Positions 13,901 through 22,900 of a DNA stretch of 64,000 nt are shown here, piece after piece. How positions within the stretch are numbered: position 1 is the first letter of the stretch; the number at the start of each line of letters is the position of its first letter. The stretch spans positions 1 through 64,000 of the forward strand of contig NIVC01003970.1 in NCBI GenBank assembly GCA_002269645.1. The letters are read 5' to 3'. Source of the DNA: Macrostomum lignano (taxonomy: Eukaryota). A program made the position numbers and the translations under genes. The notes under the pieces were generated by a model, which saw nothing but the letters and a program-made list of their open reading frames with translations, made no database searches and had not been told where the DNA came from.

Positions 13901-16900
13901 TGGCGGTTTTCTCAACATTGACACCAACAATCAGGCATCGTATGTGGATGCTACTGAATACTATTATGTTCTGGTGGACCTGAAGTTGCTGCATACAATT
14001 TCGGGTGTCGACTTCCAGAGCCGTGAGAAACTGCCCTCAATATTTAATAACGCATCATCGGCACTTATGCCCATTTTAAATGCCTCACATCCCGTCTCAT
14101 CCCACACGGCCCACAGCAACCAGTGGCCAGTACCCGATCCACGTGCGCGTCAGCAGCAGCTATGACTCATCTCTGGGAGAGCGCGCTTTTATCAACTGGC
14201 CTCTGTGCGACTCGCTGGAGCTATCTGTCAGCAGCCTCACCGAGTACAGCTTCACCTGCTCCAGCGTCATGCTTGGTCGATATCTCGTTCTCACCAAGTC
14301 AGCTGATTTGGGTTTCTTTCGAGTTGATCAAATCTTTGTGTTCGCAGAGGAGTGTAAGCTTGAGTTAAATTTAAAAGTATTTTTTGCCTAATATACGCAA
14401 CTTAATTTTTGTCATGCTTAAATCCACTTTTACGAGCTATGTACGGCTACAATATTCTACAAATTAGTACGGAGGAAAGATATGAGCGTAAAATGCGAAT
14501 TAAAAGTGATAAAATTCAAGGAATACAAGATGCTAGGTACAACTAATAGTGCAAGGAATTACAACCCAGAAGTGATTTTCTCAAAAACAAAGTACAACGT
14601 GTTCTGTTAGAAACCCGTATTGCATGGTGTGGTATGATTCTGCACTGTTTATGCAGCCAAAGTTGGTAGAGTCCGAGAACATTTAGGAAGTCTAAATATT
14701 TTTACTTTATTCACTATCAGACTCAAAAGTGCATCGTATGCATCGTATGTGTTGTTAACATGCTTCCGAGTTGCTTTCTAACTCTCACTGGTGCTAAAAT
14801 ATAGTAGAGCATAAATTGTAATGAAATTAGAAATTATTTATTAATAATCGAAGCAGTATTTTTTCTCTCTATCCTCAGACTATCACTACGACTCGGAGGT
14901 GAACATGCTTCCGAGTTGCTTTCTAACTCTCACTGGTGCTAAAATATAGTAGAGCATAAATTGTAATGAAATTAGAAATTATTTATTAATAATCGAAGCA
15001 GTATTTTTTCTCTCTATCCTCAGACTATCACTACGACTCGGAGGTGAACATGCTTCCGAGTTGCTTTCTAACTCTCACTGGTGCTAAAATATAGTAGAGC
15101 ATAAATTGTAATGAAATTAGAAATTATTTATTAATAATCGAAGCAGTATTTTTTCTCTCTATCCTCAGACTATCACTACGACTCGGAGGTGAACATGCTT
15201 CCGAGTTGCTTTCTAACTCTCACTGGTGCTAAAATATAGTAGAGCATAAATTGTAATGAAATTAGAAATTATTTATTAATAATCGAAGCAGTATTTTTTC
15301 TCTCTATCCTCAGACTATCACTACGACTCGGAGGTGAACATGCTTCCGAGTTGCTTTCTAACTCTCACTGGTGCTAAAATATAGTAGAGCATAAATTGTA
15401 ATGAAATTAGAAATTATTTATTAATAATCGAAGCAGTATTTTTTCTCTCTATCCTCAGACTATCACTACGACTCGGAGGTGAACATGCTTCCGAGTTGCT
15501 TTCTAACTCTCACTGGTGCTAAAATATAGTAGAGCATAAATTGTAATGAAATTAGAAATTATTTATTAATAATCGAAGCAGTATTTTTTCTCTCTATCCT
15601 CAGACTATCACTACGACTCGGAGGTGAACATGCTTCCGAGTTGCTTTCTAACTCTCACTGGTGCTAAAATATAGTAGAGCATAAATTGTAATGAAATTAG
15701 AAATTATTTATTAATAATCGAAGCAGTATTTTTTCTCTCTATCCTCAGACTATCACTACGACTCGGAGGTGAACATGCTTCCGAGTTGCTTTCTAACTCT
15801 CACTGGTGCTAAAATATAGTAGAGCATAAATTGTAATGAAATTAGAAATTATTTATTAATAATCGAAGCAGTATTTTTTCTCTCTATCCTCAGACTATCA
15901 CTACGACTCGGAGGTGAACATGCTTCCGAGTTGCTTTCTAACTCTCACTGGTGCTAAAATATAGTAGAGCATAAATTGTAATGAAATTAGAAATTATTTA
16001 TTAATAATCGAAGCAGTATTTTTTCTCTCTATCCTCAGACTATCACTACGACTCGGAGGTGAACATGCTTCCGAGTTGCTTTCTAACTCTCACTGGTGCT
16101 AAAATATAGTAGAGCATAAATTGTAATGAAATTAGAAATTATTTATTAATAATCGAAGCAGTATTTTTTCTCTCTATCCTCAGACTATCACTACGACTCG
16201 GAGGTGAACATGCTTCCGAGTTGCTTTCTAACTCTCACTGGTGCTAAAATATAGTAGAGCATAAATTGTAATGAAATTAGAAATTATTTATTAATAATCG
16301 AAGCAGTATTTTTTCTCTCTATCCTCAGACTATCACTACGACTCGGAGGTGAACATGCTTCCGAGTTGCTTTCTAACTCTCACTGGTGCTAAAATATAGT
16401 AGAGCATAAATTGTAATGAAATTAGAAATTATTTATTAATAATCGAAGCAGTATTTTTTCTCTCTATCCTCAGACTATCACTACGACTCGGAGGTGAACA
16501 TGCTTCCGAGTTGCTTTCTAACTCTCACTGGTGCTAAAATATAGTAGAGCATAAATTGTAATGAAATTAGAAATTATTTATTAATAATCGAAGCAGTATT
16601 TTTTCTCTCTATCCTCAGACTATCACTACGACTCGGAGGTGAACATGCTTCCGAGTTGCTTTCTAACTCTCACTGGTGCTAAAATATAGTAGAGCATAAA
16701 TTGTAATGAAATTAGAAATTATTTATTAATAATCGAAGCAGTATTTTTTCTCTCTATCCTCAGACTATCACTACGACTCGGAGGTGAACATGCTTCCGAG
16801 TTGCTTTCTAACTCTCACTGGTGCTAAAATATAGTAGAGCATAAATTGTAATGAAATTAGAAATTATTTATTAATAATCGAAGCAGTATTTTTTCTCTCT

Positions 16901-19900: not shown

Positions 19901-22900
19901 ATTAGAAATTATTTATTAATAATCGAAGCAGTATTTTTTCTCTCTATCCTCAGACTATCACTACGACTCGGAGGTGAACATGCTTCCGAGTTGCTTTCTA
20001 ACTCTCACTGGTGCTAAAATATAGTAGAGCATAAATTGTAATGAAATTAGAAATTATTTATTAATAATCGAAGCAGTATTTTTTCTCTCTATCCTCAGAC
20101 TATCACTACGACTCGGAGGTGAACATGCTTCCGAGTTGCTTTCTAACTCTCACTGGTGCTAAAATATAGTAGAGCATAAATTGTAATGAAATTAGAAATT
20201 ATTTATTAATAATCGAAGCAGTATTTTTTCTCTCTATCCTCAGACTATCACTACGACTCGGAGGTGAACATGCTTCCGAGTTGCTTTCTAACTCTCACTG
20301 GTGCTAAAATATAGTAGAGCATAAATTGTAATGAAATTAGAAATTATTTATTAATAATCGAAGCAGTATTTTTTCTCTCTATCCTCAGACTATCACTACG
20401 ACTCGGAGGTGAACATGCTTCCGAGTTGCTTTCTAACTCTCACTGGTGCTAAAATATAGTAGAGCATAAATTGTAATGAAATTAGAAATTATTTATTAAT
20501 AATCGAAGCAGTATTTTTTCTCTCTATCCTCAGACTATCACTACGACTCGGAGGTGAACATGCTTCCGAGTTGCTTTCTAACTCTCACTGGTGCTAAAAT
20601 ATAGTAGAGCATAAATTGTAATGAAATTAGAAATTATTTATTAATAATCGAAGCAGTATTTTTTCTCTCTATCCTCAGACTATCACTACGACTCGGAGGT
20701 GAACATGCTTCCGAGTTGCTTTCTAACTCTCACTGGTGCTAAAATATAGTAGAGCATAAATTGTAATGAAATTAGAAATTATTTATTAATAATCGAAGCA
20801 GTATTTTTTCTCTCTATCCTCAGACTATCACTACGACTCGGAGGTGAACATGCTTCCGAGTTGCTTTCTAACTCTCACTGGTGCTAAAATATAGTAGAGC
20901 ATAAATTGTAATGAAATTAGAAATTATTTATTAATAATCGAAGCAGTATTTTTTCTCTCTATCCTCAGACTATCACTACGACTCGGAGGTGAACATGCTT
21001 CCGAGTTGCTTTCTAACTCTCACTGGTGCTAAAATATAGTAGAGCATAAATTGTAATGAAATTAATTTATTAATAATTGAAGCGGTATTTTTTCTCTCTA
21101 TCCTCAGACTATCACTACAACTCGGAGGTGGACATGCGAGTCAGTTGGATGCCGGATGAGACGATCTCCAAGGCTCTGCAGACTAACAATGTCACATTCA
21201 ATTTGCTCATTCGCAACAGACTGGCAAAGATTTGGTTCACCGATCAGTATGGCTACTTGGAGGCAATGACCAATGTAGGAAACAAGTTCTTAATGTCCAA
21301 TTTTCATGCCAGTAAAGCACCCATTTCCTAAAACCAATCAATACTCATGCATTCCAGCCTCGCTACGTGCTGATGCTGCAAGGAGACGGAGCGAGCCTGA
21401 TCAAATATGTCGGAGCGCAAATCGAGAACAAAGACTACTCTGTGAACAGCCCGGCCGCATATGTACTCGAAATGCTGAACAGCTCACTCAACCGGACAGC
21501 AACTCATAATACACAGGACTTTGCCAAGGTCTGCATCACCTGGACAGCCGACAACAATGCAACCACGTTTTTCACTTACGTAGATGGCCAGCTGATTGGT
21601 CAGTCAACGGACTTCCGTCACGCCATCCCGATCAGAAAAATAGGCTACTCAAACGACGTATACAGCACTGGCACAAGCATACAGATGTACTTTGATGTGA
21701 GGAGCACAAAGACCCTGTCAACGTATCGGCCACAGTACTACTTCCACCAAGAACGAGTATATCTACAGGTAAATCTATTTCATATTTGGCTTTGTTCCCT
21801 ACTGGCATACTTGAGCACTCTGCATTGTTGCATTTCTAGGCTACTTTTGACAAGTTTGTGAAGCTGCAGTGGATAACACTGCAGGGCGGTTCAGGCATCA
21901 ACGTGGTCTCTGATGCATGGACCACCGTGCTCAGCTACTATATATACTACAGTGAGAATGCACGGTACTGGAGATCGCTTTACAATGGAATGGTAAGTAG
22001 TGATGAAGGCGTTTTAATTGCCTGTACACCATTTTTGCCACGATTTCTTGCGGAAAAAAATTACCTGCTTGCTTTTCCCTAAAATCTATGATTGTGAATA
22101 ATTGAATGTTATAGAAATCATTCTGGCACATAATTAATATCCGTCTAATCCGCAAGCGGAACTTTAGTCGAAATGTAGTATAGCTCGTAGTGTAGGAGTG
22201 CATGATTCCAGCAGGCTGAAGAGGCTTTGCGCACTCCTGCTTTTGCCATTGATGCACGCCATTTGCAGTTGAGGCACGCAAAACACCAAAACTTACCCAC
22301 TCACTCACTCACTCCAGCTTCTAGTTGGTCCACGGCAGACTCGCCAAGCAGCCAGTTTGCGGTTCCTACCGGATCTGCTGACCCTGGCTCTCAGAGTGTG
22401 CCCGTCTGCTTATCAAACACTAAATGAAATGAAGCTGCAGCTCTATGGATGCCCATATGGTATGCGATTTTTTGGCCTCTATTAATTTAGATGTTTTTTA
22501 TTAACAATAATACAATAATACAAATTTTTTTCAGAGACCAAAGGTTCAACACTGCCCTACATCGTATCAAACTTCAAGTGGCGAATCCACAGCTCTGGAA
22601 GTTATCCTGAGAGAGGCAACGATGGAGACGCTCACATGTTTTATAACTATAATCAAGCCTTTGCTACGAACTTGCAAGACTACAGTGACCCATATCATTT
22701 TTGGATGATCTCGTTTGGCTATCCGACAGTAATTAAGCGAATTCGAGTCGTTGACCTGATTGAAGAGCTAGGTAACACAGGCTGATTGCTAGTAGAGTTG
22801 AATTCTCAAAATTCACCACAGTGCATTATCCATGCTGACTCTCTTTCAACAGATGAATATGGTGGAGACGTGTGCGGCAACGCAGCCAGTCGGACGAGCT

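Follow-up and report, generated by a model that had tools for sequence, protein, structure and literature searches.

A 64,000-nucleotide stretch of the genome of the flatworm Macrostomum lignano (the window; positions 1-64000 of contig C3970) carries, in an intron of a giant receptor gene of the polycystin-1/REJ type, a tandem array in which the 3' end of the intron and the first bases of the next exon are repeated 43 times ahead of the authentic intron-exon junction. With a probability of roughly 60%, the array is a young, copy-specific and non-adaptive minisatellite of the mirage type described in amphioxus rather than an evolved splicing device, and its decoy acceptors may divert some transcripts. 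The assembly searched throughout was a copy of Mlig_3_7 with 764,410,778 bp in 5,269 contigs, the published version having 764,424,962 bp in 5,270 scaffolds (PMC5730564).

Tandem Repeats Finder made a single array call at 14757-21137, with a period of 145, 44.0 copies and 99% matches. When cut in register, the interval 14757-20991 gives 43 units with zero mismatches between any of them, a pattern far beyond chance. The array and the intron that holds it consist of the following parts, a slash marking a splice boundary here and below:

14117-14353, + strand: upstream exon, ending ...FVFAEE plus one carried-over base, with the donor AGT/GTAAGC at 14354 (gene model and paralog homology).
14354-14756, + strand: unrepeated 5' portion of the native intron, which aligns collinearly with contigs C4376 and C2088, the single-unit copies.
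14757-20991, + strand: 43 identical 145-bp units, each made of 122 nt of intron 3' end and 23 nt of exon.
14758-14763, + strand: ACATGC direct repeat at the 5' unit edge, with its partner at 21132-21137; a 6-nt microhomology around the amplified segment.
14879-14898, + strand: first decoy 20-nt mini-exon, recurring each 145 bp up to the last at 20969-20988.
14889-14918, + strand: junction-made RNA hairpin, CGACUCGGAGGU, loop GAACAU, GCUUCCGAGUUG; 12 bp, -18.7 kcal/mol.
14899-14904, + strand: first decoy donor GAG/GTGAAC, present in 43 copies; the A at +4 occurs only at the duplication junction, the real exon having GTGGAC.
20992-21130, + strand: terminal 44th, native copy of 139 nt, continuous with the real exon and spared homogenisation.
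21108-21274, + strand: authentic exon (YYHYNSEVDMRVSW...), followed by the donor AAT/GTAGGA.

Every unit reads GTATTTTTTCTCTCTATCCTCAG/ACTATCACTACGACTCGGAG/GTGAAC, that is, an acceptor tract with its AG, a 20-nt mini-exon and a decoy donor, so that the mini-exons start at 14879 + 145k for k = 0 to 42. The intron part of the unit contains a TTAAT branch-point candidate in addition to the polypyrimidine tract and AG, and from at least 122 nt before the splice point to 23 nt after it the decoy acceptors match the real one exactly. The GC content of the array is 34%, against ~44% in its flanks, and the array stretches the intron to 6,754 nt, the next longest intron of the gene model being 1,203 nt. 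The original prediction had described 43 units in a 145-bp register, each with a polypyrimidine tract, an AG, 20 nt of exon and GTGAAC; its coordinates proved exact, and this composition was found in all units. It had further proposed that the donor context GAG/GTGAAC also closes the exon ending at 5370, which is true of an exon in our own model, and that the spacing of the decoys equals a normal intron size in this gene. The decoy intron interval from GTGAAC to CAG is 125 nt, close to the median model intron (~115 nt, most being 60-130 nt). The label 'satellite' given to the array was misleading, as satellite DNA forms monomer arrays at many loci or large blocks and, elsewhere in the 764-Mb assembly, the unit is found only as a single copy at two related loci.

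The borders of the two exons can be placed independently of any gene model. The 167-nt exon downstream of the array is present five times in the assembly, on C3970, on C4376 (98%), on C2088 at 121 kb (98%), on C179 (95%) and on C2088 at 75 kb (92%). In the two distant paralogs, C179 and the copy at 75 kb of C2088 (C2088a), both flanking exons are kept at 92-98%, the upstream exon (14117-14353) at 96-98%, and homology ends exactly at ...GGAGT/GTAAG and resumes at CCCCAG/ACTAT, with an intron of ~84 nt between. As the homology breaks at GTAAG and CAG, 14353 and 21108 are confirmed as exon ends.

The other copies of the exon also show the site without the array. Across the assembly the unit occurs in 44 copies here and in one copy each on C2088 and C4376, and nowhere else. 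Once the array is collapsed in silico, the window is collinear with C4376 and C2088 across the site; both loci are therefore empty sites, with a single unit and an intron that measures 519-525 nt. None of the four other assembled copies of the exon has the array, and two types of intron occupy its site among the gene copies, one of 84 nt and one of ~520 nt. Copy number thus differs, 44 against 1 and 1, between related loci that are alleles, subgenome copies or tandem paralogs. Given the single unit of the two closest copies and the 84-nt intron of the more distant paralogs, the array is young and not conserved. An origin from a transposable element or a dispersed satellite was rejected, as the related loci hold the unit once, as native sequence of their intron and exon.

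The terminal native copy differs from the array units by a 6-bp deletion (GAAATT) and three substitutions, and carries private bases in the form of a T at 21078 and an A at 21119. Base 21131 is G, whereas the unit-to-unit junctions have A. The unit at the 5' boundary of the array is not divergent and that at the 3' end is, which points to interior units that evolved in concert with the 3' terminal unit left out. The inbred DV1 line holds three subgenomes (S, L1 and L2) with a divergence of 1.9-2.4% at single-nucleotide polymorphisms (PMC10733133); were the array as old as this divergence (~2%) and not homogenised, ~125 differences would be expected in 6.2 kb, and zero are seen.

A stepwise origin may be proposed from these comparisons. 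At the single-copy loci (C4376 and C2088), AACATGC marks the intronic edge of the amplified segment and GACATGC its exonic edge. In a single-copy progenitor, a 145-bp segment flanked by the 6-nt repeat ACATGC would have straddled the intron-exon boundary by chance. Its initial duplication was probably by replication slippage, microhomology-mediated duplication or unequal exchange, and slippage or unequal exchange would then have amplified and homogenised it to 43 extra copies. Under this scenario the look of an exon-intron cassette would be a by-product of breakpoint position, the acceptor having been copied from the real one and the donor made from a valine codon and a junction base. The GT of the decoy donor belongs to the GTG valine codon of E-V-D, which is found in the real exon and in all paralogs. 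Folding of the whole unit was not significant (z = 0.61), and the junction hairpin as DNA gives -7.3 / -5.5 kcal/mol. A long-range stem that would close the unit where its DNA is single-copy was considered as an aid to the first slippage; it was missing from the predicted minimum-energy fold and is a weak idea only.

The splice signals of the units are unequal in quality. Donor and acceptor position matrices were derived from 39 high-confidence introns of our gene model. By these, the decoy and real acceptors score 9.6 bits each (gene median 9.7, rank 17 of 39), and the decoy donor GAG/GTGAAC scores 5.8 bits (rank 4 of 39, ~10th percentile; gene median 8.2). The authentic flanking donors have 6.9 and 6.4 bits and the real-exon equivalent of the decoy donor, GTGGAC, has 3.9; the decoy donor is equalled or surpassed by 5.8% of all GTs in the gene. 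The genome-wide donor motif of M. lignano is GT[G/A]AG (PMC8629364), which GTGAAC does not match.

At all 43 junctions the decoy donor is also predicted to be paired. Where exon-derived CGACUCGGAGGU adjoins intron-derived GCUUCCGAGUUG at the duplication junction, the RNA can form a hairpin (z = -5.3; none of 200 shuffles folds as well) that pairs donor positions -10 to +2, the invariant GU included. The same spot in the real exon has no comparable hairpin (-6.9 kcal/mol, z = 0.3), and in a 40-nt window at all 83 model donors the median was -5.5 and the most stable fold -11.8 kcal/mol. Structure over a 5' splice site is known to silence it, above all where complementarity to U1 is limited, weak sites being the most easily attenuated (PMC2794156; review PMC11802352). 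The weak donor and the hairpin over its GU suggest that the 43 decoy cassettes are probably without a working donor. Of the 'complete exon-intron cassettes' of the original prediction, the acceptor, 20 nt of exon and GT do stand in each unit, and what falls short is the donor, being both weak and hairpin-masked.

Translation of the possible products bore out the frame arithmetic of that prediction, namely that three mini-exons restore the frame and that a decoy acceptor with a silent donor leads to TAG after about 23 codons. The mini-exon is free of stops in every frame. The reading frame survives the inclusion of mini-exons in multiples of three; one or two shift it, and three add ...DYHYDSETITTTRRLSLRLG... 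(YYHYDSETITTTRRLSLRLGD...) in frame. With all 43 included (860 nt) the frame is shifted, and translation would end at a stop codon within the real exon. Use of a decoy acceptor without its donor gives ...YYHYDSEVNMLPSCFLTLTGAKI and then the stop, TAG, after 23 codons. Joining of the upstream exon to a decoy gives ...GGAGT/ACTATC, in which no 5' splice site (AG/GTRAGT) is regenerated, so strict recursive splicing is excluded. Recursive sites in long introns hold a conserved position, and here the ancestral intron had ~520 nt, and has 84 nt in the distant paralogs. The proposed recursive-splicing ladder is accordingly dismissed in its strict sense, both for its junction and for its unconserved position. 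Neither of the other functions suggested for the array, a source of isoforms or a poison device acting through nonsense-mediated decay (NMD), finds support as an evolved function, the array being missing from the four other exon copies. Unlike a poison exon, the array is not conserved, and the premature stop depends on the number of mini-exons included.

If the array is such a mirage-type minisatellite, the donor at 14354 would face 44 identical acceptors, the first of which is transcribed ~6.2 kb before the real one and lies at the ancestral distance of 525 nt. Identical upstream acceptors at the ancestral distance should capture part of the transcripts. With decoy donors that are weak and masked, decoy-spliced transcripts would mostly read into the stop after 23 codons and be lost or truncated, and the joining of 14353 to 21108 would give the only productive mRNA. 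A by-product effect, in which use of a decoy acceptor leads to a premature stop and mRNA decay, is thus plausible. Its cost would be tolerable given several near-identical gene copies in a neopolyploid genome. The junctions expected are diagnostic: normal splicing gives GAGGAGT/ACTATCACTACAACTCGGAGGTGGACATGCGAG (with the A at 21119), a decoy with a silent donor gives ...ACTATCACTACGACTCGGAGGTGAACATGCTTCC, and a ladder gives CTCGGAG/ACTATC. A decoy-joined product would be recognisable by ...CTCGGAG GTGAACATGCTTCC after the junction, and a spliced-leader (SL) trans-spliced product by the 35-nt SL joined to ACTATCACTAC... (ACTATCAC).

Several points weigh against this interpretation or narrow it. 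The effect of the array on splicing is drawn wholly from sequence, and the donor and acceptor matrices come from our own crude gene model and are hence somewhat circular. Amphioxus mirages reportedly leave regular splicing undisturbed, so that the array may be neutral (PMC3087553, PMC3902484). Simple slippage between the ACATGC repeats predicts a G at the unit-to-unit junctions, and the base there is A, as in the intron-side repeat; either the exchange took place slightly 5' of the microhomology, or a mutation arose in the founder junction before it was amplified. The array units were not copied from the adjoining terminal unit: they carry none of its private bases, have GAAATT, C and G as in C2088, and possess one private base of their own, an A (gcAgt). 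The ancestry of the flanks switches exactly at the array. In a three-way alignment (window 1-14756 and 20992-29156, each against C4376 and C2088), the window upstream is nearly free of differences from C4376 over several kb, the variants being nearly all private to C2088, and downstream C4376 equals C2088 and the variants are nearly all private to the window, starting inside the terminal unit at 21078. This would reflect either recombination or gene conversion at the array, or a chimeric contig. Lastly, the perfect identity of the 43 units may come in part from Pilon polishing with multi-mapping short reads, which makes 'very young' less certain; even if polishing inflated their identity, the units are at least very similar.

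The main rival to our interpretation is that the array is neutral for splicing, the spliceosome skipping the 43 decoys and joining 14353 to 21108 with no loss of efficiency relative to the single-unit copies. Its logic is that only the last acceptor precedes a full exon with a proper donor, and weak, hairpin-masked decoy donors would leave no decoy able to form a definable exon. The mirages of amphioxus Adh3, globin BflGb6 and troponin C create additional copies of splice sites, and regular mRNAs were found for these genes (PMC3087553, PMC3902484), but the reverse-transcription PCR used in amphioxus would miss products removed by decay. Moreover, nothing distinguishes the decoy acceptors from the real one for 122 nt upstream or for 23 nt downstream, the first is made ~6.2 kb earlier at the ancestral distance, and introns mostly of 60-130 nt suggest recognition across the intron, which would not need signals from a downstream exon. 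Neutrality is plausible, if less likely than not. The opposite view, that the array is a functional device giving an in-frame ladder of 0-14 copies of a 20-amino-acid insert or a regulated poison/NMD attenuator, is very unlikely. It draws on the normal size of the 125-nt decoy introns, on the identical donor context in the model at 5371, and on mini-exons that are stop-free in every frame, in frame as triples and chained by a naive gene finder 42 at a time. It has to contend with the missing array in all four other exon copies and with a junction that makes true recursive splicing impossible, and two thirds of the ladder products, as well as the all-43 product, are out of frame. An exon of 20 nt leaves little space for both splice-site complexes. 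The donor, moreover, is weak and sits in a hairpin of -18.7 kcal/mol, weak 5' sites being those most readily attenuated by structure (PMC2794156). Least probable of all is that the decoy acceptors serve SL trans-splicing, the units, with their would-be upstream donors masked, being outron-like and yielding 5'-truncated SL-capped transcripts. M. lignano does trans-splice a large share of its genes, a process that needs an acceptor unmatched by an upstream cis donor (PMC8629364), and 6.9% of Mlig_3_7 transcripts have several trans-splice sites (PMC5730564). Here, however, a good cis donor stands upstream at 14354, and the acceptor CCTCAG does not fit the enriched motif [T/C]TNCAG (PMC8629364).

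An assembly artefact, with one or a few real units expanded by the assembler or two subgenome copies joined via the repeat, would bear on the array itself and is unlikely. Mlig_3_7 was assembled with Canu from PacBio reads at ~130x coverage and polished by Pilon with Illumina and RNA-seq reads (PMC5730564), and chimeric scaffolds make up 36% of its length (PMC10733133). The contig is short (67 kb), all 43 units are identical and the ancestry switch falls exactly at the array, all of which speak for an artefact. On the other hand, the units carry the gcAgt private base, which is seen in no other assembled copy, and differ from the adjoining terminal unit at four sites; the private base and these differences speak against an assembler loop of one unit as the source of the array. 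At ~130x, and assuming the usual read length, a 6.4-kb array should fit within PacBio reads. This genome has many long minisatellite arrays, among them one of 40 bp x 100 on C2088, and a chimeric join misplaces flanks but does not make an array.

The M. lignano genome is unusually minisatellite-prone. Simple and tandem repeats make up 15% of it (PMC5730564), and minisatellite length differs between gene copies throughout this locus. A 15-bp minisatellite (CACTTGCATTTATGT) at 44776-44883 of the window stops 14 nt short of the acceptor of the exon at 44898, and counts 7.2, 8.2 and 11.2 copies across the gene copies (window and the homologous C4376/C2088 sites). A 51-bp repeat at 51389-51797 has 8.1 copies in the window and 3.1 on C4376. 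On C2088, at ~169,680-173,690, a 40-bp minisatellite reaches ~100 copies at 97% identity, with other arrays of 14-109-bp period nearby. A (TACT)86 microsatellite at 41272-41614 of the window takes up the 3' end of a model intron, stopping no more than three bases short of its acceptor (...TTACTTACTTACTTTAG/ATT, exon from 41618), and provides its own pyrimidine tract as well as branch-point-like TACTTAC motifs.

The gene that hosts the array, and its neighbour in the window, are:

327-46630, + strand: host gene, a giant polycystin-1/REJ-like receptor with ~84 model exons and ~7,500 amino acids.
57543-64000, + strand: beginning of the gene copy that follows in tandem ('copy B'), which matches 123-6255 at 96-97%.

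The gene model is a crude one, made by dynamic programming with codon log-odds trained on large exons and generic splice matrices. That the host is a giant receptor gene, as originally predicted, is confirmed by Pfam and by a UniRef match. On the + strand the Pfam domains are Lectin_C, F5/8 type C, LamG-like, Kringle, Fibrinogen_C, PKD (1.4e-12), REJ (1.4e-26), Polycystin_dom (8.9e-29) and PKD_channel (1.1e-31). In the polycystin-1/REJ family, PKD and REJ domains come first and a polycystin domain and a PKD-type channel region after them, as they do here, and the C-terminal 500 amino acids of the spliced model are 99% identical to an M. lignano 'PKD_channel domain-containing protein' in UniRef. 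Around the array junction, Pfam recognised the Kringle domain alone in the spliced region. Among 1.8 billion representative proteins, the exon adjoining the array had five weak matches, the best at 33% identity, and a 615-amino-acid spliced query across the junction had no match; no annotated protein in that search, therefore, reveals how the junction is spliced. A large exon of 1,062 amino acids had no protein match within the length filter, and an Rfam scan of the window gave no hits. When left unconstrained, a naive gene model chains through 42 of the 43 mini-exons, so ab initio gene predictors are misled here.

Judged from its differing codons (28 synonymous and 13 nonsynonymous between the window and C4376, 45 and 23 between the window and C2088), the host gene family is under purifying selection. 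The ectodomain module that begins with the exon next to the array (21358-21768 and neighbouring exons) is repeated within the same protein, for example at about model residues 1062-1200, and has the look of a repeat specific to this lineage. The receptor gene stands in a tandem cluster, with copies of ~45-57 kb, on C2088 at ~55-147 kb, on C179 at ~178-186 kb and at 57543-64000 of the window; contig C3970 ends at 67,280, ~9.9 kb into copy B. The 3' halves of the copies are strongly homogenised (97-99.7%), and the 5' halves are more diverged (88-92%). Relative to the window, exons of array-free copies show the single-base deletions GGAG-GCAAA, AACTT-CTATT and TCCGT-GTTTC, at sites on C4376 (homologous to window ~21416) and C2088 (homologous to window ~24928 and ~26873). 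They are either indel errors left over from long reads or genuine frameshifts; in the latter case the array-bearing copy is the intact one in those exons. The only COX1-like match in the assembly, at C1982:179846-180208 (- strand), is a 120-amino-acid fragment with two TAG stops and is probably a nuclear mitochondrial insert. The assembly copy is without the mitochondrial genome, and lies 14,184 bp and one sequence below the published total.

The array extends mirages from amphioxus to a flatworm, in a form larger than the one case for which we found counts (3 and 6), and suggests that amplification of intron-exon junctions is a general outcome of active minisatellite turnover and not a peculiarity of lancelets. 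There is a slim chance that the array is used by the spliceosome, with a variable number of mini-exons included, as an in-frame ladder of 20-amino-acid inserts between two ectodomain modules or as an attenuator of this gene copy tunable by copy number; on a wider view, mirage arrays may generally arise in minisatellite-prone genomes and feed the birth of exons and introns. Either way, 44 identical acceptors in series with hairpin-masked decoy donors form a natural experiment on splice-site choice, in an animal with public RNA-seq and PacBio data and working transgenesis. Arrays of this type also mislead gene predictors, and may mark chimeric joins in Mlig_3_7.

Recursive splice sites, such as the ratchet points of Drosophila and the recursive exons of vertebrates, offer one comparison. 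Like them, the array places extra 3' splice sites in what is now a long intron (6,754 nt). Unlike them, it has no juxtaposed or regenerated 5' splice site and is not conserved, and the ancestral intron was only ~520 nt. Intronic variable number tandem repeats and repeat expansions that perturb splicing are known from human disease. They share with the array the placement of a polymorphic tandem repeat beside a splice site, where it can make competing splice signals, but they usually hold no copy of the authentic splice site and exon start.

In the model of Rogers (1989), introns are gained by tandem duplication of an AG/GT proto-splice site, with examples from Hellsten et al. 2011 (PMC3265369), potato RdRp (PMC4974935) and Drosophila (PMC2891723). 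Here too tandem duplication sets a GT upstream of an AG, and 125 nt of each 145-bp unit would be removable. The duplicated piece, however, already holds a real acceptor, removal of the decoy introns would leave 20-nt remnants, and restoration of the mRNA requires the old donor to skip to the last acceptor.

The closest likeness is to the mirages of amphioxus, described in Adh3 (Canestro et al. 2002), the globins BflGb6 and BflGb9 (Ebner et al. 2010, PMC3087553), troponin C and PGBD5 (PMC3902484). The BflGb6 mirage is built of 150-160-bp units of intron 3' end and exon 5' part, in 6 and 3 units in two haplotypes, that are 81-100% identical; its interior units are homogenised, with the boundary units excluded (PMC3087553). 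The flatworm array differs in its host, which is not a cephalochordate, in its 44 units as against the 3 and 6 of BflGb6 (the only mirage with counts that we found), in the complete identity of its 43 extra units and in a strong junction hairpin over the decoy donor, and it is described here from its DNA. In the literature searchable here, the term mirage turned up for amphioxus only. In both animals the unit runs head to tail, joins the 3' end of an intron to the start of the exon that follows, covering a genuine intron-exon boundary, and includes AG and GT signals, at a similar size (145 bp here, 150-160 bp in BflGb6). In both, the interior is uniform and the boundary unit divergent. The number of units varies from one related gene copy to another in the flatworm, and from one haplotype to another in amphioxus. 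The array closes with the authentic junction, which runs on into the remainder of its exon. Judged by this organisation, the array of M. lignano is a member of the mirage kind.

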